Shown here piece after piece: positions 15,600 through 31,755 of a stretch of DNA of 64,000 nt. Every line of letters begins with the position of its first letter. Position 1 is the first letter of the stretch. This DNA comes from Epithemia pelagica. Lineage: Eukaryota > Protista > Bacillariophyta. Location of the stretch: positions 3,162,001-3,226,000 of the forward strand of contig OX337238.1 of NCBI GenBank assembly GCA_946965045.2, given 5' to 3'. The notes under the pieces are model-generated. The model saw only the letters and a list, made by a program, of their open reading frames with translations. It made no database searches and was not told the origin of the DNA. The position numbers and the translations under genes were made by a program.

Positions 15600-16359
15600 A
15601 AGTACAGCTGCGACCATATAGCGCGCGATCAAGAACCCTCCACGTCCCACGTCCACGTCGTCCCAGAAAGAACAAACAAAGGCGTTTTGGGTTTGGGCGC
15701 CTTTTGGTTGTGGGTGTGGTATGTTGTGGCACTGTCCTCTCTCGTTTGCTGGATTCGCTCTGTCCACAAAGAGGACAGGACAATCACACCATCACCGTGA
15801 GTTTGGATCTGGTCCAAAGCACCAACAACGAGGACTAGAAGGAAACCGCGCTGCAGCAACAATGCAATTTGCTTCATTCCAAGAATGACGACAACCAACA
15901 CATTGTGGACTTTCTTCACGAGCGTCTGCACTGATTGATGCCTTGGAAATGGAGCAGATGCATCTGCCGCGTGCCACGGGAGAATTTTTCTTTGATGACG
16001 TTGTTGCCCGTACTACGACTACGGCATCTACCACAAACCAAGATATCCAAGACGAAGACTGTGTGACGGCCACCAGTGTTATCGACTTTCTCAATCTGTT
16101 TTATGGAGGTACCAAAGTGGTCAGTGACGACGTGGCCCTGCAAATTGCCCAATCAGGTGGAGCCGATGCCTGTTTGAGTCGATTGGAATCTCAACAAGCA
16201 TTTGGTGTGGCCGAATCGTTGGCGGCTGCCATAGTGGGAGGAGGAGCCGCTGGTTTTGCATCCATTGCCCTGGCCCTGTGGATGTCTCTTATTGTCTACG
16301 AAATAGGAAACTTACTGTCCTGGACGAAACTTTTGCTTCCAGAACTATATACTAACTAG
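15600..16359 (+). pseudogene. EF-hand membrane protein family, copy 1 (internal deletion)
   Basis: Aligns with copy 2 (DFLNLFYGGTK, CVTA..V.DFL), but about 140 bp are missing between gagcgtctgca and tgattgatgcc. This removes most of the EF-hand and leaves a stop before 15943. Confidence 0.7.
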
Positions 16360-17062
16360 GAGTTTTTTTGGGGGAATCAAGTGTGTGTTTTGTCTTATAG
16401 ATTGAATCTTGAAGTAGAGAGTCGAAACATTCCGTGCTTCAGCAGAAAGTTCTGCTAGATGATACCTTTTCCATGCCTCGTGTGTGGACATTCGTTGCCG
16501 TGCGGACCAGGTGTCTCTTTTGTCGTCGTCCTCTTGGAACACGGGAATTTGTGGACTCCTTCTATTTTTGCAACTGAAAGCAAATGAATACCAAGTCTGC
16601 CTTGTGTCTGAAATTACAAGGGAAATAATGATACATTCCGGTTCGTTGTTCGTTGTCCGTCTGCCAGGAGGTTATCGTAGAGCCAACATCATTCTACCTA
16701 CCTCTACTAGGTAGGTAAGTGGTTCGACTATAGCAAGTTTCACAAAGAAATCAGGGATACCCCGGGATCAATCGTATGCTGGACATGTTCGGGTCGCCCA
16801 CGGCAGCTTTTTCCTGTCTTGTACTCTATAATATACTCAAGAGCCTAGCCGGTCCTCTTCCATTGTCCGGTCCTCTTCCATTGTCCTCTACCAAACAATG
16901 TCCTACCGTCCAAGACACGAGTGCTTGCAAAAGGCTCCATTCATTCAATGAATCGTCGTTGGACGTATCATCCATCGGCACAGGTGGTCATGACGAGTAC
17001 AGGCGGGATATCATACCATTCAAGGAGGACACTTCGAAGTTCTTCCTATGTGTCAAAAGGGA

Positions 17063-17410
17063 CTCATCAGTCGCAGGGTCGCCACAGTCACTTTCTGAGT
17101 ACCATTCGCGCGCCAGACAAGAATCATGAAATAACAGTACGCTTCGCGACTGAAACCGTACGCAAAAAAAGAGAAATTTTTTGTTACGGATCGAAAAAAT
17201 ACGTTACGGGCAAAGTCGAAGATTCCGTCGCAGTTGACTCTCCGCAGTCGCAGGTCATCGCGACCTGCGGCAGTCACTTACTCAGTAGTATCCGCGCGCC
17301 AGACAGGAATCGTAAAATCCCAGTACGCTTTCTTAATCTTCCGTTGCGACTGAAACTTTTTGCTATGGATCGAAAAAAACTAATACGTTACGGTTACGGG
17401 CAAAGTTGCA
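17063..17410 (+). promoter_or_regulatory. Tandemly duplicated upstream module of beta-helix gene 1
   Basis: Two copies of cgcgcgccagaca..gaat..cagtacgctt..gcgactgaaac..ttttg(t/c)ta(c/t)ggatcgaaaaaa..tacgggcaaagt (near 17107 and 17293). The same blocks occur upstream of the other two beta-helix genes. Confidence 0.55.
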
Positions 17411-17517
17411 TAGGAGCACACCTATTATATTGTTACGAATAGGAATTCAAGTTACCACTATGGCCTCCTTCTGCTCATAAAATCGCAAACAAGACAAGTT
17501 CGAAAACAAAAGACTAC

Positions 17518-18546
17518 ATGTTCACACTCACTTCTCTTACCGTCGCTCTTTTCTTGTTGTTCGCGTCGCTGCCTTCTTCCAATGGCCTTTTGAGAGGGTC
17601 GTCGTCACCGTCCTCCGCTTGGCCCAAAAGTACGGACACTATGGAACGTCACCTCAATACAATCGAGCTGGCAGAAGGAAGGATGAAGGGATCCTCGTCT
17701 TCCATTGCGAAGGGTTCTCCCCGCAAGCTTGCTGGAACGATGGACAAGAACAAGCGCTGTACTACCGGCGCGATTGTGATTAATGAGTGTGGCAAGAGAT
17801 TAGTTCGAGACAATCGAAGAATATCGTTGTTTATTTTGGAGGACAATTTGGAGTGCAATGTCCAAGAGACTGACTTTGGACTTGATATTTTTGGCTCGGG
17901 TGTCACACTGGATTGCAATGGAAATACAATAACAGGTGTTGTGCCAGATGGTATTTCTTCCTTCACCTTTGATGGAATTCGGATTCGGAATGACAACATT
18001 GTTCTCAAAAACTGCATTCTCACTGGTTTTGATAATGGAATCAAGCTGGGGCAAGAGTTTTCTGCCGTCAGCACTATTTTGTTGCAAAATATTGATTCTC
18101 ACCACAATCGTGTCGACGGTTTGGACCTGGATGCTTTTCGAGGTGTATTGGAAGACATTACAGTCTTGGATTCCACATTCAACGATAACGGAAACACGGG
18201 AGTGCAAGTCAATACCGGTAGCTTCGCGAGGGTTGAAAATCTGGTCGTGTCGGGAGTTCAAGCCAACCGCAATGGTGATTCTGGATTTGAGTTGCATTTC
18301 ATCAAGTCTGGACGGTTGGTGGACGTTGAAGCCAACAACAACGGAAGTGACGTCGATCAATTATTCAGAGATGGCATCAACGTAAGGACTAGGGAAAATG
18401 ACGATACCAAGCTTGTGATTCAAGATTCCAGGGCCTGTGGCAATGGAGATGAAGATATCAGCGACTCTTTCAATGCTGCTACCTTTCATGGAATATCCTG
18501 CACCAACGACGATGGCAAGGGAACTTGTGCCTGCGATTGCCCATAA
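17518..18546 (+). CDS. Secreted right-handed parallel beta-helix (pectin-lyase-like/NosD-like) protein, copy 1
   Basis: Signal peptide ending SNG|LLRG, RHL and RKL motifs, then GVTLDCNGNTITG, DGIRIRNDNIVLKNCILTGFDNGIKL and N-x-x-N-G turn repeats; Cys-rich C terminus CTNDDGKGTCACDCP. Confidence 0.8.
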   Translation: MFTLTSLTVALFLLFASLPSSNGLLRGSSSPSSAWPKSTDTMERHLNTIELAEGRMKGSSSSIAKGSPRKLAGTMDKNKRCTTGAIVINECGKRLVRDNRRISLFILEDNLECNVQETDFGLDIFGSGVTLDCNGNTITGVVPDGISSFTFDGIRIRNDNIVLKNCILTGFDNGIKLGQEFSAVSTILLQNIDSHHNRVDGLDLDAFRGVLEDITVLDSTFNDNGNTGVQVNTGSFARVENLVVSGVQANRNGDSGFELHFIKSGRLVDVEANNNGSDVDQLFRDGINVRTRENDDTKLVIQDSRACGNGDEDISDSFNAATFHGISCTNDDGKGTCACDCP

Positions 18547-18619
18547 CATTTCCTTCGGTAGTAACGATTTTGGGTTGACCGTCTGGGTAAACTAACTACT
18601 CTATTAGCAGACCGATTAT

Positions 18620-18965
18620 GCTTGGTTGCACTGCAACAGGAAGATGAAGACTACTGTTGTAGACGACACATTGTGATTAGAGAACCAGTGGTATAGGGAG
18701 GTAACTAGGAGTATTGGTTTACCTAAAACTCTCTCGAACGCTCCCTCAGTTTGGGATTGAGTTTGGATTGTGAGATTTGCACAGAGCTTGGAGTACAGGT
18801 GGGAACCAGATTATGGCAGACGCACCATCGAAAATCAATCCCAAACTGTAGAAGCGTTCGAGAGAGTCTCAGGTAAAACATAGGTAGCTCCCTCTACCAC
18901 TGGTTCTCTAGTCACGATTCGTCGTCAACAACAGTAGTCTTTTTCTTCCTTTTGCAGCACCATCA
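18620..18965. repeat. Imperfect foldback inverted repeat (~140-bp arms)
   Basis: 18620-18770 (gactactgttg..agaaccagtggta..ctctctcgaacgct..gtttgggattga) is mirrored by 18830-18965, with a spacer of about 60 bp. Confidence 0.8.
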
Positions 18966-19597
18966 AGTAGAGACTTGTCATCATGGGTGGTGGTACCCAC
19001 CGTTACACCAAGCTCTGTGCACCCTTTCATCACAGCGACCTCCGAACAACCTACCTAGAAACCTATTCTTTTTCGTTTTCTGAGTCGCAAGATTCGTGAT
19101 TTTCGTGGTCGCCACGATGTGGTTCCGAATGACGTGCGGAAAAGTTTTGGCTTCCGAATGTGACGTCCAGCCGACCATGATGTGACGCAATCCTGTCCGT
19201 AGATCATTTTTATTGTTTCATTCAGGCATTATTGCGATCGGATCGATCCAATGGCTCCTGGAGGATACCAAGAACCCAAGAACGAGTACAACTACCTGCT
19301 GCTGTTTTAGCACGCTCAGCATGCAGATACTATCTACCATGCCATAGTACGACACCTTCGCACCATGGTTGTGCGCTCGCTCTTTTTCTCCGGAGCATTC
19401 ATCCATTCTCAAAACGACGATTCTGTAGAAAAACCCGGGAACGAGTCTACCAAACATGTCCATTCGAAAACATTTCTGTTTACTACCAACGTAGTTAGTT
19501 AGGTCGGCCACGAAACTGGATGCTCACGAGCCGTCCAGTTCGGTTGTGCTTTTTACAAGAACGAGTGCAAATACTGTGCATATCAATCAAAGGTTGT

Positions 19598-20338
19598 TTA
19601 GTTGGCCGACTTGAGGTATTCCAACATGGTGTTGGCATCACTGACTTCAAAGGGATCCGGTCCCGAGTTTTGGACACGGTCCGGTTCGCAAAACAATTTT
19701 TCAATCGTACCATCCTTCACGACCATGCTGTAGCGCCAGGATCGTTCGCCAAAGCCCCGCTCCGATTCCCAGACACAACTCATGCCCATGCCACGAGTAA
19801 AGTGGGCGGCACCGTCGGGCAACAATTTGGTCTTGGTAAAGCCATTGGCACCAATCGTCTTGTCTTCTTCCAAACCCAAATTCAAGCCCCATTGACGCAT
19901 CACAAAGGCGTCGTTCACTGACAAGCCTAATGAAATCCAACAAACAAACAACAAGAACAATAGACACGAGGCACAAACAAACAAAGAAACAACACGTTAG
20001 TGAGTATTTCATCTTGGCTGCCACGAGACACCGACAAACACAACACACAGTAGACACATACAGTAAATTTCATCAATGCCCGTGGCCTTGATTTCTTCGT
20101 ACAGAGCATCGTATCCAGGCACATGGGTGGAACTGCACGTGGGGGTAAAGGCTCCGGGCAAGCTAAAGACGACGACGCGCTTGCCGGCAAAAATGTCCTT
20201 GCTGGGCACATCCTTCCAATCAAAGGGATTCTCGTCTTCACTTTCAATGCGGACACGAGTGACAAAGGTCATTTCCGGAACGGCATCGCCTTCTTGTTTC
20301 GGCGTCGTCCATTCCGGTTTCAAATCTATCGTTGCCAT
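19598..20338 (-). CDS. Type II (Prx5-like) peroxiredoxin, presequence-less copy, 2 exons (20338-20062, 19926-19598), 201 aa
   Basis: MATIDLKPEW...VFSLPGAFTPTCSSTHVPGY...YC|LSVNDAFVMRQW...DPFEVSDANTMLEYL; 135-bp GT-AG intron; peroxidatic Cys intact. Confidence 0.88.
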
Positions 20339-20730
20339 TGTCGTGCTCTACTAGATGTGGACAGAGTTTGGAATAGAGGTGGGTACCAGATTATGGCAGA
20401 CTACGAGTGCACAGAGCTTGGAGTAAAGGTGGTTACCAGGGCCCACGATGACGTCATGTCGAAAGGAGAAAGAAAGTGGCCACGTCAGATCACTCCCGAA
20501 GCGGCACTATGGACTGAAATGTAGGCATCGAGTCGCACATGACCCCGTGCCAAGGATGTGTACGCACGAAGTTGGTCCGTACGTACGTACCAACCGAAAC
20601 CATTGTCACAAAAAGTCTTGAGAGATTCATCTGTTGCGTGTGAGCCACATCACTCTGTCAGACCAATAGATCCAAACACTGGATCCCATTCCCTTGCAGC
20701 CACTCCTTTTCATTCCACCAATAAAAGACG

Positions 20731-21021
20731 ATGATGTTCAAGACCTTGATTGTTTCCTTGGCTGTCGCCTCCAAGGCGAGTTTGGCCTTTCAGCCTCTGG
20801 CCGCGACTCGTGCGAGATCGGCCTTGGCGTCGGCCGCTGTCGAAACATCGTATTCCATGGACTTGAAACCAGAATGGACGACGCCGAAGCAAGAAGGCGA
20901 TGCCGTTCCGGAAATGACATTTGTCACTCGTGTCCGTATCGAAAGTGAAGATGAAAACCCCTTTGATTGGAAGGATGTGCCCAGCAAGGACATTTTTGCC
21001 GGCAAGCGCGTCGTGGTCTTT
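20731..21021 (+). pseudogene. 5'-only peroxiredoxin copy (presequence plus N terminus), truncated before the active site
   Basis: Nearly identical to 25285-25575 and preceded by the same promoter (20370-20730). Ends RVVVF* and switches abruptly to beta-helix sequence. Confidence 0.85.
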
Positions 21022-21450
21022 TGAATCTTTTCAAGGTATATTGTCAGACATGACAGTCTTCGATTCAAAATTCAACCATGACGAAGATAATGGAGTTGAA
21101 CTAGATGAGGCTGTTGCGAAGGTTGAAAAGCTGGTTGTGTCTGGAGTTGAAGCATACAGGAAGGTGATTCTGGATTCGTTTTGAGTTTCATTATGACGCA
21201 CGTTTGGTTGGTGTCGAAGCCATCAACAATGGAAGGGATGTTGATCAAAATATAAGACGCGACATTAGGATCAGGCATTTTGGGAAAACCAACACCAATC
21301 TTGTGATTCAAGGCTCGAGGGCATTTGGCAATGGAGAAGAAAGCAATGGACAAGATATCAAGCATCCATTCTATAGTGCTACCTTCCAAAGCAATTTCAG
21401 GCGCAAACGACAATGGCAAGGGAATTTTTGCCTGCGATTGTTCCTAGCCT
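21022..21450 (+). pseudogene. 3' half of a beta-helix gene, frameshifted
   Basis: ESFQGILSDMTVFDSKFN...VVSGVEA and VGVEAINNG...NLVIQGSRAFGNG lie in different frames; ends gcctgcgattgttcctag like the family C terminus. Confidence 0.82.
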
Positions 21451-21953
21451 TTGATTGTGCTGCAAACGCAAGAAAACGAACATGGTTGTAGACGACGAAT
21501 CGACGAGAAGAACTGTCATCCTGCTGGTTTGGGACGGTCTATAGTTGGACACTTTGACCATGAATGTGGCTTCTTGTGTCGGACACTCTGCGGAAACACG
21601 GCAGATCAGAGAAAACCCCTGTCGTACGGTTCAGCAAACATCAAACTCATTCGAAAGTGCATGGGTTAGAGCAAATTCCTCGCAAACACAATATCAAAGC
21701 ATTGTTAGAGCTCCATATTCCTTCATGAAGCAAAACGTTGACAAGGCGGATATTGAAGATTCATGGTCCTGATCTGCAGTGTCTTTGCCTTTTTGCCTCA
21801 AGCAATGAAAGTGGTTGAATGCTATGCGAGTCTGTAGACGAGGCGTGCCACAAGAAAATAAACTTGATCAAGACGAAACACTACGTGACAGCCGCCAGAA
21901 GTACCTGACGGGGTTTTCTAATATTACTACTACCATGGAGGCATGGTAGGAAG

Positions 21954-23496
21954 ATGCCTCCCGACTACCGCCCCCTCGTCGTCCCTCACAAACTCGGACT
22001 TTGGTTTCTACGACCACGATCCAAACGCGACTCAGTCGGCAGACGCACAACAAGAAACCTCCACGTCGTTGCAAGTTGCAAGTTGCACACCAAGGCTTTT
22101 TACGCATGCAGTGGTGTCGTCTACATCGTCTTGTCTGCGTTTGTTGTCGGCTGTTTGTTTCTCTCGCTCTGTGGATATACGAGAGACCTCAAACGTTGGC
22201 TGTGTTTGGACAAATTGTGCTACATCTTCACCTTCACCACACCACCAACCATCACCATGAGCCTGTTTCCCGATGACGTGACGGATTTCTTGACCATTGT
22301 CGGGCTTGTGGTGCACCAATTCATACCGGCCCGACGCATCCAAAGCATCGGCAACACTGCGGATGCCAACGCGCCGCAGCCACACTGCTATTTGCTTCAT
22401 TCCAAACATGACGATACCAATAACAACAACAAACGAGGTACAACACGATGTAGACTTTCTACGCGAGCGTTTGCAGGATCGTCAACCGTTTGAGACGCAT
22501 CGGTTGCGGTCCCTCTATATGTCGCTCTTGTTGGGTTTGCAAGAGACGGAAGCAATGGATCTCAAACGCATGATGGAGGCATCCATGGCCACCATTGACA
22601 CCAACAATGATGGCATGATTGACGCGCTGGAAATGGAACACTTGCATCTGCCTCGTGAAACGGAAGAATTCTTGTTTGATGACGTTGTGGACTGTACTAC
22701 GACTGCGACCAACGAACCACAACAACAACAACAACAAGACGAAGAAGAAGACTGTGTGACGGCCGCCAATGTCGTGGACTTTCTCAACCTGTTTTATGGA
22801 GGTACCAAGCTCGTCAGAGACGACTTGGCCCTGCTAATTGCGCAAGCGGGCGGCACCGATGCTTGTTTGACTCGATGGGGATTCGAACAGGCCTTTGGCG
22901 TGGCAGAACCGTCGGTGGCGGCTGGAGTTCGTGTAGTGGATGCCTCGTTGTGTGATGGTGGAGCCGTGCCATTGGTTGCCGTGCTGACCATGTTGGTGTC
23001 ACTCGTCGTCATCGTGTTATTGGTTGGATTGCCTCTTTTTATTCTCCACTATTACTCACAAAGTGAACACCTATCTGGTTGGAAACGATGCTTCTTGAGC
23101 AAAGAATGTCGGAAGAACGACACCAGGAGGTTGTCGTATAGGCAACATCTACCGTACGTTGGGTTCTGTACATATGCGACTACTGCACCGGTCCGATTGC
23201 GAGCGAACGCGGTTTGGAGTGTGGATACGTTAATTCAGTCGCACTCGCGCGCCAGAAAAAAGTCATTCTCGTACATTGCGACTGAAACATTTTTGCTACG
23301 GATCCAAATGCTACGGGCTGAAAGTTGCACCAGGAGTAAACATTGTTACGCAGGTTTCCTTTCCGGTCTCCCTCTTCTCATAAAATCGCAAACACGACAA
23401 GTTCGAAACCATTCGGCAAACATGTGCACATTCGAGTCCCTTTCCGTAGTTCTTTTCTTCTTGTTGTTGTCGTTGCCTTCTTCGAATGGCCTTTAA
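21954..23496 (+). pseudogene. EF-hand membrane protein family, copy 2 (apparent +1 frameshift near 22430, no own stop)
   Basis: Canonical EF-hand loop DTNNDGMIDALE and a C-terminal TM segment. The upstream PHCYLLHSK block (homologous to copy 3 TCYLLESK) is in another frame, with the shift inside aacaacaacaaacgag. Could be an assembly indel. Confidence 0.6.
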
Positions 23497-24471
23497 CGAG
23501 GGTCCTCGTCATCATTCTCCGCCATGCCAAAAAGTTTTGAAATAAGGGCGCGTCATTTGAGCACAGAAGAGTTAACCGAAAGAAGCATGAAGGGCGCCTC
23601 GTCCTCCATTTCCAAGGCTGTTCCCCGCAAGCTTTTTGGTATGATAGACAAGAACGAGCGCTGTACTACCGACGCGATTGTGATTACTGAGTGTGAGACT
23701 GCATTGGAAGCTGACAATTCGTTGTATATTTTGGAGGACGATTTGGTGTGCAATGTCGAAGATGCAGGCCTTGGACTTGATATAACTGGCACAGGTATCA
23801 CACTGGATTGCAATGGAAAAGCACTTACTGGTTTTGTGCCAGCCGATTTCAGGTTTTCTTTCTTTGACGGAATTCGGATTCGTAATGATAACATTGTTAT
23901 CAGAAACTGCGAAATCACCGGATTTGATGATGGAATCAAGGTGGGGCAAGACAATGCTAAAGTCAGCAATATCTTGCTGCAAAATATTGATTCTCACCAC
24001 AATCGTTTCGACGGTCTGGAAGTAGAAAGTTTTCGTGGAGTATTCTCGGACATCACAGTCTTCGATTCAAAATTCAACGACAACAGGGAGAATGGATTTA
24101 AAGTAAACAGGGAAATTAGGAGGGTTGCAAATTTGGTTATGTCTGGAGTTGAAGCAAACAGGAATGGTCATTCTGGATTTGTTTTGGGGGGTTTCATTGA
24201 GACTGGACGTTTGGTTGGTGTCGAAGCCAACAACAATGGAAGCGCTGATGTCGCTGAAACTCCCGGAAAAAGAACTGGCATTACAATTGAGGGGGTTGAG
24301 GGGATGGAAGATGGTGATACGAATTTTGTGATCCAAGATTCCAGGGCATGTGGCAATGGAGATGAAAGTAATGACCTGGATATTAGGGATCCTTTCAATG
24401 CTGCTACCTTTCAGGCAATGTCATGCACAAACGACGATGGCAAGGGAATTTGTGCCTGCGATTGTTCATAG
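23422..24471 (+). CDS. Beta-helix protein copy 2, with an in-frame TAA at 23494-23496 after the signal peptide
   Basis: MCTFESLSVVLFFLLLSLPSSNGL*RGSSSS where paralogs read NGLLRG. The rest (ATG 23524, 315 aa) is intact and in the same frame. Confidence 0.75.
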
Positions 24472-24758
24472 CCTTTACTACGGTAGTATCGATTTGGGGT
24501 TGACCGTCTGGGTAAACTAATCACTTTAGTAGCAGCCCGCTTATGCTTGATTGTGCTGCAACAGGAAAATAAAAACCACTGTTGTCGACGGCACATCGTG
24601 ATTCGAGAACCAGTGGTATAGGGAGGTAACTATTGTTGTAAGACTCTCTTGAACGCTTCCACAGTTTGGGATTGAGTTTGGATTTTGAGATTTGCACAGA
24701 GCTTGGAGTTGAGGTGGGAACCAGATTATGGCGGAGTTCGGAGATCTGTGATGACAAA

Positions 24759-25113
24759 GTGCACAGAGCCTGGAGTAAAGGTGGGTACCATGGCCCGTGG
24801 TGACGTCATGTCGAAAGGAGAAAGAAAGTGGCCACGTCAGATCACTCCCGAAACGACACTATGGACTGAACTGTAGGAATCGAGTCGCACATGACCCCGT
24901 GCCAATCATGAGAAGGAGGATGTAATGGAGGTGGGTACCAGATTATGGCAGACTACGAGTGCACAGAGCTTGGAGTAAAGGTGCCCACGATGACGTCATG
25001 TAGAAAGGAGAAAGAAAGTGGCCACGTCAGATCACTCCCGAAGCGGCACTATGGACTGAAATGTAGGCATCGAGTCGCACATGACCCCGTGCCAATCACG
25101 AGAAGGAGGATGT
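24759..25113 (+). promoter_or_regulatory. Duplicated peroxiredoxin promoter module with bZIP-type sites
   Basis: Two copies about 190 bp apart, each with TGACGTCA (24801, 24991) and CCACGTCA (24832, 25022); a third copy at 20449/20480. Confidence 0.55.
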
Positions 25114-25284
25114 GTACGCACGAAGTTGGTCCGTACGTACGTACCAACCAAAACCATTGTCACAAAAAGTCTTGAGAGATTCATCTGTTGCGTGTGAGCC
25201 ACATCACTCTGTCAGACCAATAGATCCAAACACTGGATCCCATTCCCTTGCAGCCACTCCTTTTCATTCCACCAATAGAAGACG

Positions 25285-26142
25285 ATGATGTTCAAGACCT
25301 TGATTGTTTCCTTGGCTGTTGCCTCCAAGTCGAGTTTTGCCTTTCAGCCTTTGACTGCCGTTCGTGCGAGTTCGGCCTTGGCGTCGGCCGCCGTCGAAAA
25401 ATCGTATTCCATGGACTTGAAACCAGAATGGACGACGCCGAAGCAAGAAGGCGATGCCGTTCCGGAAATGACCTTTGTCACTCGTGTCCGTATCGAAAGT
25501 GAAGATGAAAACCCCTTTGATTGGAAGGATGTGCCCAGCAAGGACATTTTTGCCGGCAAGCGCGTCGTCGTCTTTGGCTTGCCCGGAGCCTTTACCCCCA
25601 CGTGCAGTTCCACCCATGTGCCTGGATACGATGCTCTGTACGAAGAAATCAAGGCCACGGGCATTGATGAAATTTACTGTATGTGTCTACTGTGTGTTGT
25701 GTTTGTCGGTGTCTCGTGGCAGCCAAGATGAAATACTCACTAACGTGTTGTTTCTTTGTTTGTTTGTGCCTCGTGTTTATTGTTCTTGTTGTTTGTTTGT
25801 TGGATTTCATTAGGCTTGTCGGTGAACGACGCCTTTGTGATGCGTCAATGGGGCTTGAAATTGGGTTTGGAAGAAGACAAGACGATTGGTGCCAATGGCT
25901 TTACCAAGACCAAATTGTTGCCGGACGGTGCCGCCCACTTTACGCGTGGCATGGGCATGAGTTGTGTCTGGGAATCGGAGCGGGGCTTTGGCGAACGATC
26001 CTGGCGCTACAGCATGGTCGTGAAGGATGGTACGATTGAAAAATTGTTTTGCGAACCGGACCGTGTCCAAAACTCGGGACCTGATCCCTTTGAAGTCAGT
26101 GATGCCAACACCATGTTGGAATACCTCAAGTCGGCCAACTAA
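25285..26142 (+). CDS. Type II (Prx5-like) peroxiredoxin with bipartite plastid-targeting presequence, 2 exons (25285-25678, 25814-26142), 240 aa
   Basis: Signal peptide plus ASAFAP-like SFA|FQP and an Ala/Ser-rich transit peptide; FGLPGAFTPTCSS active site; GT-AG intron 25679-25813 joins YC|LSVNDAF in frame. Confidence 0.92.
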
Positions 26143-26764
26143 ACAACTTTTGATTGACATACACAGTATTTGCACTCGTTCTTGTAAAAAGCACAACCGA
26201 ACTGGATGGCTCGTGAGTATCCAGTTTCGTGGCCGACCTAACTAAATACGTTGGTAGTAAATAGAAATGTTTTCGAATGGGCATGTTTGGTAGACTCGTT
26301 CCCGGGTTTTTCTACAGAATCGTCGTTTTGAGAATGGATGAATGCTCCGGAGAAAAAGAGCGAGCGCACAACCATGGTGCGAAGGTGTCGTAATATGGCA
26401 TGGTAGATAGTATTTGCACGCTGAACGTGCTAAAACAGCAGCAGGTAGTTGTACTCGTTCTTGGGTTCTTGGTATCCTCCAGGAGCCATTGGATCGATCC
26501 GATCGCAATAATGCCTGAATGAAACAATAAAAATGATCTACGGACAGGATTGCGTCACAGCATGGTCGGCTGGACGTCACATTCGGAAGCCAAAACTTTT
26601 CCGCACGTCATTCGGAACCACATCGTGGCGACCACGAAAATCCGACTCAGAAAACGAAAAAGAGTAGGTTTCTAGGTAGCAGAGCACGACAATGGCAACG
26701 ATAGAAACACCAGCAAGTAACACTCGTTTCTGCCCGTGGCGAGCACACGCCGACGGCCGTCACC

Positions 26765-27055
26765 AAATTGACAAAGAGGACAGTCACAATGCCAACGAAT
26801 TGGCTCGTCATACTTGTGGTGGTTTTGTTGTTGGCAAGCCAAACGTCGCTGTGTGTGTTTGTCGACAAACTGTTCGATCTGCGGCCAACAACCAAAGCGG
26901 CAGCGAGAACAATGAGAGCGAGTTGCGTGTTCGACCTTATCTTGACGACGTGGATCTCTCTTCCCCGTAGGGAAGACTGCTATTTTCTTAGAACGCACAG
27001 TCATCGGTGGTCGCCTTTACGGTTCCGAATGACGTTCCTCTCTGCTTCCGAATGT
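26765..27055 (+). repeat. Diverged direct duplication, partner ~30455-30790
   Basis: Shared blocks aaagaggacagtcacaatg, gaacgcac.gtca and ggttccga..tgacgttc..tgcttccgaa occur in the same order at both sites. Confidence 0.55.
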
Positions 27056-27481
27056 GGTGTCTTGGAGCGACAATGGTCCGTACACCAGACACAACGCCAT
27101 GTTGTTCCGTAGTAATATAGAACCGACATGTTGTTCTCACCACACCACCTCTCGTCATGGACAATGCCTCTATGTGACGAGTCCAGCACTGATTGCTTCT
27201 ATAGTTGTAAGTAGTGCTACATCATACTATTCGAAACCTGTCCATCGCGTTTAGTGCTGGCCGCTGTCACGCAGTGCTTCGACTCCTCGACCAAGGTTTC
27301 TTGCCGTGTGCGTGTCGTCAGTCTTGGAGCAAGTGGTTCCCGTCATCAAAGCCGAAATCAAATTGAAAGAATAGTACTCACATTACACCAGTGGAATGTG
27401 TTCCACTTTCTCGATCATGAGGCTGCTAATAGAGTAGTTTACCCATGTTTGCAATCCAAACTCTTTATTCCAGCTTAGAGG

Positions 27482-28564
27482 TTATGAACAATCGCAGGAA
27501 CAAATTTCCTTGCCATTGGTGGTTTCGCATGAAATTGCTTGGAAGGTAGCACCACTAAATTGATCCACGATACCCAGTCTACTACTCCGTGTTTCTCCAT
27601 TATCGCATGCCCTCGAATCTTGGATAACAAGATTGCTGTTGGTGTCCCCAAACTTCCCAATCCTAATGCCAACTCTTGCGATAAAAGCGTCATTACTTCC
27701 GTTGTTGTTGGCTTCGACATCAACCAAACGCCCAGTCGTTATGAAATCCAAAACAAATCCAGAATCACCATTCTTGTTTGCTTCAACTCCAGACATAATG
27801 AGATTTTTAACCTCCCCATCCCCACGAGTATTTATATTAGCTCCATCGCGTCCATTCTCGTTGAATTTGGAATCAAAGACTGTGATGTCTGCCACTTCAT
27901 ACTGAATATTTGAAGTGTCTTCCACCAGACCGAGGGCCAATTCTAAAAATAGAATTGAAGAAATGTCAAAGTCCAGGCCGTTGGCACTATTGTGGTGAGA
28001 ATCAAAATTTTGCAACAAAATATTGCTCGTGACAGTACCGGCTTGTCCCAGCACGATTCCACTTGAAAAACTAGTAATATCGCAGTTTCTGACAACAATG
28101 TTATCACCACGAATCATAATTCCAACCACGGAAAACGGAAAATCGGCTGCCGCAACACCTGCTATTGTCTTTCCATTGCAATCCAGTGTGATACCTGTGC
28201 CAGCAATAGAAAGTCCATATACATCTTTCTCATCGCAATTCAAATTGTCCTCCAATATGTACAAAGAATTGTCAGCATCCAATATCGTACCACACTCAGT
28301 AATCACAATCGCGTCTGTAGTACAGCGCTCCTTGTTGTCCATCATACCAAAAAGCTTGCGAGGAACAGCCTTGGAAATGGAGGACGATGCTCCCTTCATC
28401 CTTCCTTGAGCAAAGTGTATTGTGCTTATTTCACGCGCCTTTGTTTCAGCATTTTTTGGCATGGTGGAGGATGATGACGACGTCCCTCGCAAAAGGCCAT
28501 TTGAAAAAGGCAAAGACAGGAACAACAAGAAAAGAGCCACAGTACGGGACTTGAGTGTGCACAT
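27482..28564 (-). CDS. Beta-helix protein copy 3 (inverted orientation), 360 aa
   Basis: ATG 28564: MCTLKSRTVALFLLFLSLPFSNGLLRG...PRKLFG...GITLDCNGKTIAG...CETTNGKEICSCDCS; extra segment ISSILFLELALGLVEDTSNIQYE. Confidence 0.8.
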   Translation of the reverse strand: MCTLKSRTVALFLLFLSLPFSNGLLRGTSSSSSTMPKNAETKAREISTIHFAQGRMKGASSSISKAVPRKLFGMMDNKERCTTDAIVITECGTILDADNSLYILEDNLNCDEKDVYGLSIAGTGITLDCNGKTIAGVAAADFPFSVVGIMIRGDNIVVRNCDITSFSSGIVLGQAGTVTSNILLQNFDSHHNSANGLDFDISSILFLELALGLVEDTSNIQYEVADITVFDSKFNENGRDGANINTRGDGEVKNLIMSGVEANKNGDSGFVLDFITTGRLVDVEANNNGSNDAFIARVGIRIGKFGDTNSNLVIQDSRACDNGETRSSRLGIVDQFSGATFQAISCETTNGKEICSCDCS

Positions 28565-30852
28565 GTTTGTCTCTTGTTTTCGAACCCTGTGTCGTGTTTG
28601 CGATTTTATGAGCAGAAAGAGACCATTGATGATATAATGGCTACAGGAGAGGAAACCGTAACAACTTCTCCTTCTCCTTTTTTTTGCGAGCATGAACAAG
28701 ATTTGTACTCGTAGCAACATTGCACATTGCCCGTTACAACTAGGTATTGCGCAGCACATAGGAGTAATAATTTTGATCCGTGTCAAAAAGGAATTTGTTA
28801 CGGCTTCTATAATATTTATCAGTCGCAAAAAGACATGGCGCGCGAATGTGACTGAATTTGTGAATGTGACTGCGACTGCAAGTGGCTCAGATCATACGCA
28901 ATATGCAGACATCCCATTCTCGCGGATGGGTCGCATTCTGAACAGGACACAAACATGACACTGAAACCGCAAGAAAGTTATGGGTCATTGGCGAAATGGT
29001 CGTGACACGAACCTTCCAATGTCGGAACAAACCGTCTTGTCCTTGCAACAGCAACAAGCACAGCCACAAGACGACGACCATCCGAGTAGCTTCATTCATG
29101 ATGGTTCCGGATTCAGTCATCTGGCCGAATAGTAAGAAGCATTGAGATGGCTGTCTTCTTGTGGCACTCTCGTGCTGGTCGAGCGTCGGTATCTGGAAAT
29201 GAACCAGATGGGCAAGACGATTTTTTCTGTTGGCCGTTTTCTTGTGGCACTCTCGTGCTGGTCTATCGTCGGTAGCTGCCATAGAAACAGATGGGCAAGA
29301 CGATTTTTTTCTGTAATTCTACTTGTGGCTTCGTGGAAGAGGACAAACCACGCGCCATGTAAACTGATTGGTGAAAGCTGTAGTCTATTCCACGCTGTCT
29401 CGCATTCATGACTACCAAAGAGATATTGAGACGACAACAAAGACACCCGCATGCCAATTGCCCGCTTCTTGCCGAGTTCTTCTCACGGCGAACAATTTGT
29501 CCCATCCACTGGACCTACAGAGGCAAAAAGTTATTCGCAGAAAAGTGCACGACAACTACAGGACTCATGCTATAAGTGGGAATTGAATCATACTGAAAAC
29601 AACGAGAACTGGATTGATAATTGATAACACAGAGCAAAACTGATCAACGCCACCAGCACCCAAGGACGTGTATCCTTCATCCCATTTTCGCCTCATGGTA
29701 TTTCTCTTTGCCAATATTCGCCAGCCCTCCACAGACGCATCCCCGACAGTGCTGTTGTTGTCGCATCCAAGTGTTTGCCATATCCAGCTTGGGTACTTGA
29801 CATTGAGTCACCATCTTCTCTTTTTGCCCACCAGACACCATATTCCCACTCCATGATGGTGAAACAAAATCAGCAAGCAACAAGAAACCATGGCAGCCTA
29901 AACCCGAGCTGTTGGATCCATCCACCATCACTCCATGATGGTGAACTGTGGTGGTGTCTTCATGGGGATGTTTTCACTTACTTGTGTCCTGTGGCCCCGG
30001 TCGCTCCATTGTGCGTCTGTGTGTGATGGTGTTGTTATTGCCTTTGTCGTCGAGTTGCCCCCGTCAGTTCTTCCCCAACATCAGCGTGTTGCTTTCTTGC
30101 AAAGGAAATTTGAGCTCAAATGCTTTCAAATTCATCTGGTGTTTGGCATAGTTCCTCCGTCTAGTTTCGTTCTGTTGGACCGTGCAACGGTCGGTGGTGG
30201 CTTCGTCTGGTTTCTTTCCTGCTGGACCATGTAACGAGGGTTTCTGTGTTCTCCCGATTCATTTCTGTATGCGTAAAAGCCGAGGCGAATTTTTCTCGTG
30301 GATGACCAAAAGTGTCCACCATCTATACTGTTTCAGACCTGCGAGGGCATTTCTCATCGTACAAGAGGACCTCCCTGTCCCTGAGCGTCTCCTTTCTCGA
30401 TTCTTTGTCTAAATCATTAATCTCTTTCTTGCTTGGGTCGTTTTGCTGAAAAATGAGAAAGAGGACAGTCACAATGTCCGAGAATGAGGGTGCATCAAAG
30501 CTGTGTAGTGTTGGTGGTGTCGGAGCGATAGAGATAGACGATCAACTTGGCTCGAATAGCAGACTTTTTGTTGACAAACAAAACGTCGGTGTGTGTTTGT
30601 GTGTCAATGAACTGTCCGATAGCATCATCAATTATAGTAGAACAACGACACGAATAAGCCGGTTCCTTTTGCTCCCGCCTTTCTAGGTAGTTGCGTACTC
30701 CAACTTATCGTGACTCTCTCGGAACGCACTGTCAGTAGTCGCCGTTATGGTTCCGAGTGTGACGTTCTTCTCATTTTTTGCTTCCGAACGAGCATCTAGT
30801 AGGTGAGTGTTTGGGTTTTGGAGCGACCACTTGTTGGTTCGGGCCATTCAAG

Positions 30853-31755
30853 TTACAACGACGACGCCGACGACAATGAGGACGACAAGAGGGTTTGTTC
30901 CCACGGTGTAAAGGTTCGTGTCACAATCAATTTAGCAATGACCCATGTTGGAGTGCTGTCCTCGTTGTTGTCATCCTTGTCGTCCTTTCGGACCATGCCA
31001 AACCGGGTTTGTCCTTCGACGTACATGGGTTGGGGCGGCGAGGGTGGCGCAATCCCACACGAGGTTCCACTCCAAGTACCGCGTTCGTACCAATGGGCCA
31101 ATACCCAATAGCATTCCTCTTCCTGTTCCTCTTCTTTGTTCGTGGTTTTTGATTGGAGTCGCAGGGCCGTGGGTGGCAGATAAAAATCCACGACCACGTC
31201 GGGATGGGCTTGACAAAATTCGAGGCATCGTTCCACCAAGGTTTCGGCCGAAACCGTCTTGGCCGCGGCTGGATCTAATGACGAGGAAAGTGCACAGACA
31301 TCTCGAATAGTGGCCGTCGTCCCAAAACAGGACCGAATTTGGGTCGCATTCTTGTTTGTAACACCTTGAAAATATTGCCTCACAACGTGTTCCATGTCAT
31401 CGAAATCAGAGTCAAGTAGAGCCAACGCAGAAGAAGATGACGACGACGACGAGTCATGTGTAGCCTGCAGCATGGGGTTCCTTCTCCTGTTTGAAAAGGA
31501 GGAGTAGGGGCGCCACCACGACGACGTGGTGGTTGGCCCGAACGAGGAAAAGGCTACCCTGTTGTTGGACAAACGGACTTGTGGTTGTCGTTGTTGTTGA
31601 ATCCTGGTTGACAGTCGTCGTCGTCTGGAGCATGTTGTTGGTGGTGAAAATGCCACTGAATGCACAACCGAGTGATACTCATTCGTCGTCGTAACAGTAG
31701 CAGCAGTGGATCCCACCAACAAAAACCACAACAGCAAGAAAAGACGTGAAGCCAT
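30853..31755 (-). CDS. SnoaL/NTF2-like domain protein, probably plastid-targeted
   Basis: Signal peptide MASRLFLLLWFLLVG..., AFSPP, Arg/Ser-rich transit region; domain VVRQYFQGVTNKNATQIRSCF...AHWYERGTWSG...YVEGQTRF...IAKLIVTRTF. Confidence 0.65.
   Translation of the reverse strand: MASRLFLLLWFLLVGSTAATVTTTNEYHSVVHSVAFSPPTTCSRRRRLSTRIQQQRQPQVRLSNNRVAFSSFGPTTTSSWWRPYSSFSNRRRNPMLQATHDSSSSSSSSALALLDSDFDDMEHVVRQYFQGVTNKNATQIRSCFGTTATIRDVCALSSSLDPAAAKTVSAETLVERCLEFCQAHPDVVVDFYLPPTALRLQSKTTNKEEEQEEECYWVLAHWYERGTWSGTSCGIAPPSPPQPMYVEGQTRFGMVRKDDKDDNNEDSTPTWVIAKLIVTRTFTPWEQTLLSSSLSSASSL

Follow-up and report, generated by a model that had tools for sequence, protein, structure and literature searches.

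The window analysed here is the whole 64,000-nucleotide stretch of Epithemia pelagica DNA at G000:C11:3162001-3226000, taken from a 60.5-Mb genome of 23 contigs, and positions below are those of the window. Reading of its sequence revealed three pieces of one Prx5-type peroxiredoxin gene: a leaderless copy on the minus strand (copy A), a truncated piece on the plus strand (fragment T), and an intact leader-bearing gene (copy B) located 4.5 kb beyond fragment T. The features of the locus are as follows:

20338-19598, minus strand: copy A, a leaderless Prx5-type gene with an intact ORF of 201 aa
20062..20338, minus strand: exon 1 of copy A, with the ATG at 20338-20336, encoding MATI, then DLKPEW...EIY and the first base of Cys93
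19927..20061, minus strand: intron of copy A, 135 nt, GT..AG, spliced in an RNA contig
19598..19926, minus strand: exon 2 of copy A, which ends with the stop codon at 19600-19598
19459..19597, minus strand: 3' UTR of copy A to the poly(A) site; record 9 of RNA run X5 ends at 19459 with a T run on the plus strand
19051..19458, minus strand: remainder of the duplicated flank downstream of copy A; the match to copy B stops at 19051, which equals 26679 in copy B
20325..20353, minus strand: junction piece J, 29 nt, matching 26677-26705 at 28/29 positions
20354..20730, no strand assigned: divergent intergenic and putative promoter region of copy A and fragment T, matching the region upstream of copy B at about 24921-25285
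20731..21024, plus strand: fragment T, with a signal peptide, a transit peptide, 54 residues of the mature protein and a stop
25285..26142, plus strand: copy B, an intact leader-bearing gene of 240 aa with a 43-aa bipartite plastid presequence
25285-25678 and 25814-26142, plus strand: exons of copy B, by the GT..AG convention used for copy A
26677..26705, plus strand: J', the part of copy B's 3' flank from which J derives, with an ATG at 26692-26694

The leader of copy B reads MMFKTLIVSLAVASKSSFA followed by FQPLTAVRASSALASAAVEKSYSM (43 residues), with the cleavage site between KSSFA and FQP. Fragment T stops after ...GKRVVVF; the active site is absent and no Pfam match was obtained for it. 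Fragment T then runs, in a different frame, into a piece of a gene of the neighbouring beta-helix family (21028-21452).

Copy A is a genuine gene of intact structure, predicted to encode a thiol peroxidase of the Prx5 type (Redoxin family). Database searches were run on each exon separately, and the joined coding sequence was translated and compared locally only. The Pfam Redoxin profile (PF08534, cut-off 26.6 bits) matched exon 1 at 42.3 bits (residues 15-91) and exon 2 at 28.6 bits, and both exons together covered profile positions 1-146 of 148. The active-site motif PxxxTxxC was found as P61-G-A-F-T65-P-T-C68, which holds the peroxidatic Cys and is identical to the PGAFTPTC of PDB entry 1nm3. 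The conserved active-site Arg was also found, GERSWRYSM of copy A aligning with GKRSWRYSM of 1nm3, with two Arg in the motif. The closest solved structures were of the Prx5 type, and 1nm3 aligned with residues 15-91 of exon 1 and with nearly all of exon 2 (E 4e-21). Copy A thus resembles HI0572 of Haemophilus influenzae (1nm3) in its Redoxin family membership and in the conserved PGAFTPTC and GxRSWRYSM motifs, but unlike HI0572 it has no glutaredoxin domain. Other comparators from the Prx5 subfamily were poplar PrxD type II (1tp9) and human PRDX5 (1hd2 and 1oc3); relative to the structures of this subfamily, the loops of copy A are longer (ESEDENPF and LGLEEDKTIGANG). The nearest homologues of the protein in our search were diatom transcripts from Helicotheca, Synedra, Entomoneis, and Phaeodactylum; together with the ASAFAP-type cleavage motif in the copy B leader, they mark the organism as a diatom. 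The original prediction held that the rearranged copy had lost the 43-aa signal plus transit peptide and had kept the intron, the active-site Cys and a full ORF. This description was accurate: the leader is gone, the spliced coding sequence of 201 aa is open, and PGAFTPTC is present.

The N-terminus of copy A was remade by a head-to-tail junction, through which a ready-made in-frame ATG came in and the 43-residue leader went out. The minus strand of 19598-20354 opens with TAG TAG AGC ACG ACA ATG GCA ACG ATA GAT TTG, which is read from the ATG as MATI-DLKPEW. This ATG is preceded by A at -3 and followed by G at +4, and two in-frame TAGs lie 9-15 nt upstream. Both of these stops belong to junction piece J, in which they are followed by a short 5' leader and by the ATG with codons 2-4; the source site of J, J', lies 535 nt past the stop of copy B. 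With 28 of 29 positions matching 26677-26705, the earlier claim that the start codon comes from the 3' flank of the other copy and stands in good context was confirmed by reading of the sequence. The body and 3' flank of copy A (20329-19051) match 25411-26679 at 96.9% identity, and the minus-strand order of copy A is therefore B 26677-26705 followed by B 25411-26679. The joint between J and the body carries a 5-nt microhomology (ATAGA in J and ATGGA in copy B, where the ATG encodes Met43), and this joint yields the reading frame MATI-DLKPEW. It sits exactly at the Met43/Asp44 boundary, 10 residues before the Redoxin domain, so that MATI in copy A stands for the 43 residues MMFK...SYSM of copy B; the predicted N-terminal peptide of copy A is (M)ATIDLKPEWTTPK. 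The far end of the copy A flank (19051, which equals B 26679) shares 3 nt with the beginning of J (B 26677), the signature of a head-to-tail arrangement (circular permutation). At this junction, the terminal 29 nt of the segment that was duplicated (gene body and 3' flank, B 25411-26705) have been joined before the first base of that same segment. Because the flank supplied a ready-made start and three codons, in frame at the boundary, one junction accounts for both the lost leader and the gained start. A further candidate was that the ORF opened by the ATG at its source (26692-26970, 92 aa) is a genuine gene that donated its start; no support for it was found, and this candidate was rejected.

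As inverted and direct repeats abound in this region, the permuted inverted copy might be suspected of being an assembly artefact. However, a k-mer unitig from DNA run X1 spans 20267-20405 with zero differences, and the junction is present in two separate contigs of ENA assembly ERZ21939226 (ctg1201l and ctg1236l) that have different flank contexts. In ctg1201l, which represents the window form, the 109-aa ORF of copy A exon 1 is identical to that of the window. The junction is real DNA and not an assembly error, and we regard an artefact as exceedingly improbable. A scan of metagenome contigs with exon 1 returned only relatives of at most 72% identity, and the junction was present in none of them. 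A single base at position 20724, 7 nt upstream of the ATG of fragment T, is A in the window and G in the only contig of run X1 that covers it (depth 65.7/65.7); copy B and ctg1236l also have G there, and the window base is possibly an assembly base error or a polymorphism.

The second ENA contig, ctg1236l, carries another version of the locus (L088) that is about 3% (1-6%) divergent from the window. L088 has the same head-to-head pair, and its minus-strand ORF starts with MATIDLKPEW and has intact exons and splice sites. The two versions agree at every base of J and of the 95 nt upstream of it, and the promoter region shows 8 differences in 377 nt. In L088, this region fronts a full-length leader-bearing gene. 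Since a complete gene stands behind the same promoter there, the truncation of fragment T is specific to the window form. Between the pair, L088 lacks a counterpart of window 21022-25575. L088 3553-9599 corresponds in reverse to window 25411-31457, so that in L088 the leaderless body runs into the downstream flank of copy B; L088 10511-14447 corresponds in reverse to window 15932-19928, so that there the leader-bearing gene runs into the downstream flank of copy A. These swapped bodies and flanks are flip isomers, as expected of inverted-repeat recombination, and the inverted copies do recombine. L088-type letters were not found in run X1 over 20354-20730; L088 may be the other haplotype or may come from another strain.

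The joint is of a tandem or circle type. Insertion of a circle would give the window form directly; tandem duplication, followed by inversion of the first copy together with the promoter, would give the L088 form. In the latter route, the leaderless ORF would have had no promoter until the second step. The original prediction of a one-step change of subcellular location therefore stands in part: a single junction does swap the leader for a start, but "one step" is not established, because tandem duplication plus inversion would have the same outcome.

The coding sequences of copies A and B differ by 12 synonymous and 2 non-synonymous changes (S59G and N108K; pN/pS 0.045), and those of copy A and the L088 leaderless copy by 7 synonymous changes and 1 non-synonymous change. 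The introns of copies A and B differ at 1 of 135 bases. One intron is common to copy A, copy B, and the L088 leaderless copy, but that of the L088 plus-strand copy is unalignable (L088 10400-10520), and the latter copy also has six changes at the end of exon 1. The dissimilar intron and exon 1 end of the L088 leader-bearing copy indicate that the duplication is older than a divergence of 2-3% implies and that the window copies have been homogenised. The SNP markers are distributed as follows:

Window copy A: FSLPG and GLNLG
Window copy B: FGLPG and GLKLG
L088 leaderless copy: FGLPG and GLNLG
L088 leader-bearing copy: FSLPG and GLNLG

Gene conversion between the copies is evident from these SNPs, which are mosaic over the four copies, and from the homogenised intron in the window. 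FSLPG versus FGLPG and GLNLG versus GLKLG had been put forward as copy-specific SNPs; they failed in this role, because gene conversion mixes them: the L088 copies recombine the markers and the RNA contigs are mosaic. As the copies exchange sequence, SNPs cannot separate them in RNA-seq, and only junction-crossing reads can. For the same reason, conversion with a functional copy, the low dN/dS (0.045) is not creditable to selection on copy A, and dN/dS was rejected as proof that copy A functions.

The region between copy A and fragment T bears on how copy A would be transcribed. The stretch 20369-21021 aligns to 24921-25575 at 93.8%; within this alignment, the promoter-like part 20369-20730 matches 24921-25285 and is head-to-head with copy A, and 392 nt separate the ATG of copy A from that of fragment T. 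The earlier statement that the leaderless copy is head-to-head with the original Prx promoter needs amending. The arrangement is indeed inverted and the region matches the upstream region of copy B, but the plus-strand gene there is fragment T and the intact gene is copy B; in the window, the region beside copy A fronts only the truncated fragment. Within this putative promoter region lie the palindromic TGACGTCA (20449-20456) and CCACGTCA (20480-20487), 111-149 nt upstream of the ATG of copy A and 244-282 nt upstream of that of fragment T. We take both to be putative bZIP-type promoter sites. The minus strand has no ATG within 118 nt upstream of the copy A start. Copy A would be transcribed divergently from this shared region, assuming that the region has bidirectional activity; our literature search for bidirectional promoters in diatoms gave nothing usable.

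Metatranscriptome RNA contigs from runs X5, X6, and X9 showed that Prx RNA is spliced and polyadenylated, with a poly(A) site at 19459. Record 12 of X6 splices the intron, skipping 19926-20060, or 19927-20061 with the cut shifted by one. The RNA contigs cover 19459-20298 only, with A and B letters mixed, and no RNA contig from the three metatranscriptome runs reaches 20299-20354, the junction, or the leader-coding region. Since the 3' UTR sequence is common to copies A and B, the transcript is not assignable to either copy. In the protein collection, no transcript-derived protein starts with MATIDLKPEW; the cluster at 90% has five members, all of them genomic ORFs from the two ENA contigs. Transcript-derived proteins of this species are absent from the collection for copy B as well as for copy A, and the absence for copy A is therefore uninformative.

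These data leave room for a reading in which copy A arose as a by-product at a rearrangement hot spot and is transcribed barely or not at all, its frame kept open by youth and gene conversion, with no cytosolic enzyme that matters. We consider this a serious possibility, though somewhat short of an even chance. In keeping with it, neither an RNA contig at the junction nor a transcript-derived MATIDLKPEW protein was seen, conversion is evident in the intron (1/135 between A and B) and in the mosaic SNPs of the four copies, and the locus contains other debris, namely fragment T and the beta-helix gene fragment. The identity of copy A between contigs is weak evidence to set against it, as the part unique to copy A is only about 24 nt long, where 0 differences were seen and roughly 0.5-3 were expected. 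On the other hand, both diverged contigs preserve the ATG, frame, splice sites, and stop, and the start lies 111-149 nt from the putative bZIP-type sites of what is a full-gene promoter in L088, with no ATG between. In addition, within the first 165 nt of copy A, 9 of 9 differences from copy B and fragment T are synonymous, which fits constraint within that lineage, but these changes may predate the junction.

The N-termini were evaluated with the ASAFind scoring matrix (PMC4329603, Table S2) and a Kyte-Doolittle mean over 9 residues, which served as a proxy for SignalP. The results were as follows:

Copy B, fragment T, and the L088 plus-strand copy: h-region 2.5; cleavage after SFA or SLA and before FQP, with F at +1; cleavage score 8.1-8.3; transit score 5.4 (cut-off 2)
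Copy A and the L088 leaderless copy: h-region maximum 0.93; residues 1-25 with a net charge of -3; no signal peptide by the proxy

The individual values were 2.51 (h-region), 8.34 (cleavage), and 5.42 (transit) for copy B, and the cleavage score of fragment T was 8.17. Like the bipartite ASAFAP presequences of diatoms (PMC4329603), copy B, fragment T, and the L088 plus-strand copy have a signal peptide with F at +1, an S/A-rich region, a net positive charge, and a score far over the ASAFind transit cut-off, whereas copy A has none of these features. The best ASAFind window in copy A (cut between VPEMT and FVTR, 4.33) falls inside the Redoxin domain and is without meaning, and under the published ASAFind rule a protein without a signal peptide is classed as "not plastid" (PMC4329603). 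ASAFind had been named in the original prediction as a check, and the matrix and hydrophobicity proxy agree with what was anticipated: copy B scores as a plastid presequence, and the N-terminus of copy A is without targeting features.

The family context was provided by three further Prx5-type paralogues in the genome:

Paralogue C5a, L004 (G000:C5:2053396-2056704): mitochondrial-like presequence MLRRFPSAAT...
Paralogue C5b, L004 (G000:C5:2053396-2056704): leaderless, MDPPTSGEEPPTKKVKG..., with 27 residues before EW
Paralogue C2, L005 (G000:C2:1620279-1623602): signal peptide only, MKLVEIVAVLLPLFVKLSEA...

All three part from the common domain at one boundary, immediately ahead of (L)KPEW or VEW, and the intron position is the same in C5a and C2, the two for which both exons were seen. 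This swapping of N-termini at the very boundary used in copy A lends some colour to another reading, in which copy A is expressed but its product is not simply cytosolic, being directed by a presequence from an unannotated upstream exon or by internal or C-terminal signals. An upstream exon could splice to an AG just before AGCACGACAATGG, and candidate acceptor AGs do occur upstream of the ATG. Two in-frame TAGs lie 9-15 nt upstream of that ATG, however, and no upstream minus-strand ORF with signal-peptide character was found. The C-terminus of copy A, ...KSAN, is presumably not a canonical PTS1 and also counts against such targeting, which we consider quite improbable.

Other diatoms have both leaderless Prx5-type forms of about 205 aa and leader-bearing forms of 230-255 aa, which indicates that a leaderless Prx5-type enzyme is normal for diatoms. 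The leaderless set (P0002, P0003, P0008, P0028, P0040, P0048, and P0051, from MMETSP and JGI transcripts) resembles copy A in having the same domain, 5-12 residues before KPEW, and no presequence. As such natural short N-termini are common among diatom Prx5-type proteins, the N-terminus of copy A suits a working enzyme. Unlike copy A, these proteins belong to an older lineage and are 62-77% identical to its exon 1, whereas copy A and the adjacent plastid-type gene share 97.8% DNA identity. Copy A derives separately and recently from the plastid-type gene. Since a leaderless paralogue is already present in the genome, a need for copy A is not evident, which again is in line with a silent copy.

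Taken with the intact gene structure and the predicted loss of targeting, the locus suggests that copy A may be expressed as a cytosolic peroxidase beside the plastid form encoded by copy B, a reading that we regard as evenly balanced. On this account, copy A would be translated from the new ATG, and the product would stay in the cytosol as an active peroxidase. A more ambitious extension, which is tentative and on the whole unlikely, takes the head-to-head pair as a two-compartment module, in which one promoter would drive a plastid and a cytosolic peroxidase and recombination would keep the enzymes near-identical and their N-termini apart. The promoter region with its putative bZIP-type sites would then serve both genes, and the cytosolic form would have been born of a duplication breakpoint.

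Relocalisation of duplicates through a change in N-terminal targeting has been described genome-wide for human mitochondrial proteins (PMC2790464), in Arabidopsis (PMC4202327) and for plant organelles (PMC7086175). Copy A resembles these cases in that it differs from copy B essentially in the N-terminal targeting peptide, which predicts another compartment. It differs from them in that the leader was lost at the duplication breakpoint itself, where the gene's own 3' flank provided the new start, and in that the copies face away from a shared promoter in inverted orientation and continue to exchange sequence; the present case is also known from sequence alone. Overall, copy A is plausibly a fairly ordinary relocalisation after partial duplication. 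If copy A is expressed as a cytosolic enzyme, it would be an unusually clean and young case of a location change by structural mutation alone, requiring a single junction that draws its start codon from non-coding flank, and no point mutations, with the parental state still beside it for comparison. If it is silent, it simply adds to the debris of a locus prone to rearrangement. The pair also illustrates how sequence exchange across an inverted repeat can persist between duplicates with different targeting.

An element of about 46 nt with the core GCACAGAGCTTGGAGTAAAGGTGGGTACCA occurs in about seven copies, in both orientations, around the Prx promoters (sites at 18773-18821, 18977-19022, 20353-20452, 24688-24804, and 24928-24975), and inverted copies of it bracket copy A. 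This element may be a promoter module or a recombination substrate. A transposon end was considered and rejected, because the occurrences in the genome are confined to the Prx locus and the element is thus not a mobile-element family. One copy of the element lies at the centre of a palindrome of about 340 nt (18621-18967) with arms 76-84% complementary, which is located between the beta-helix gene and the end of the copy A flank.
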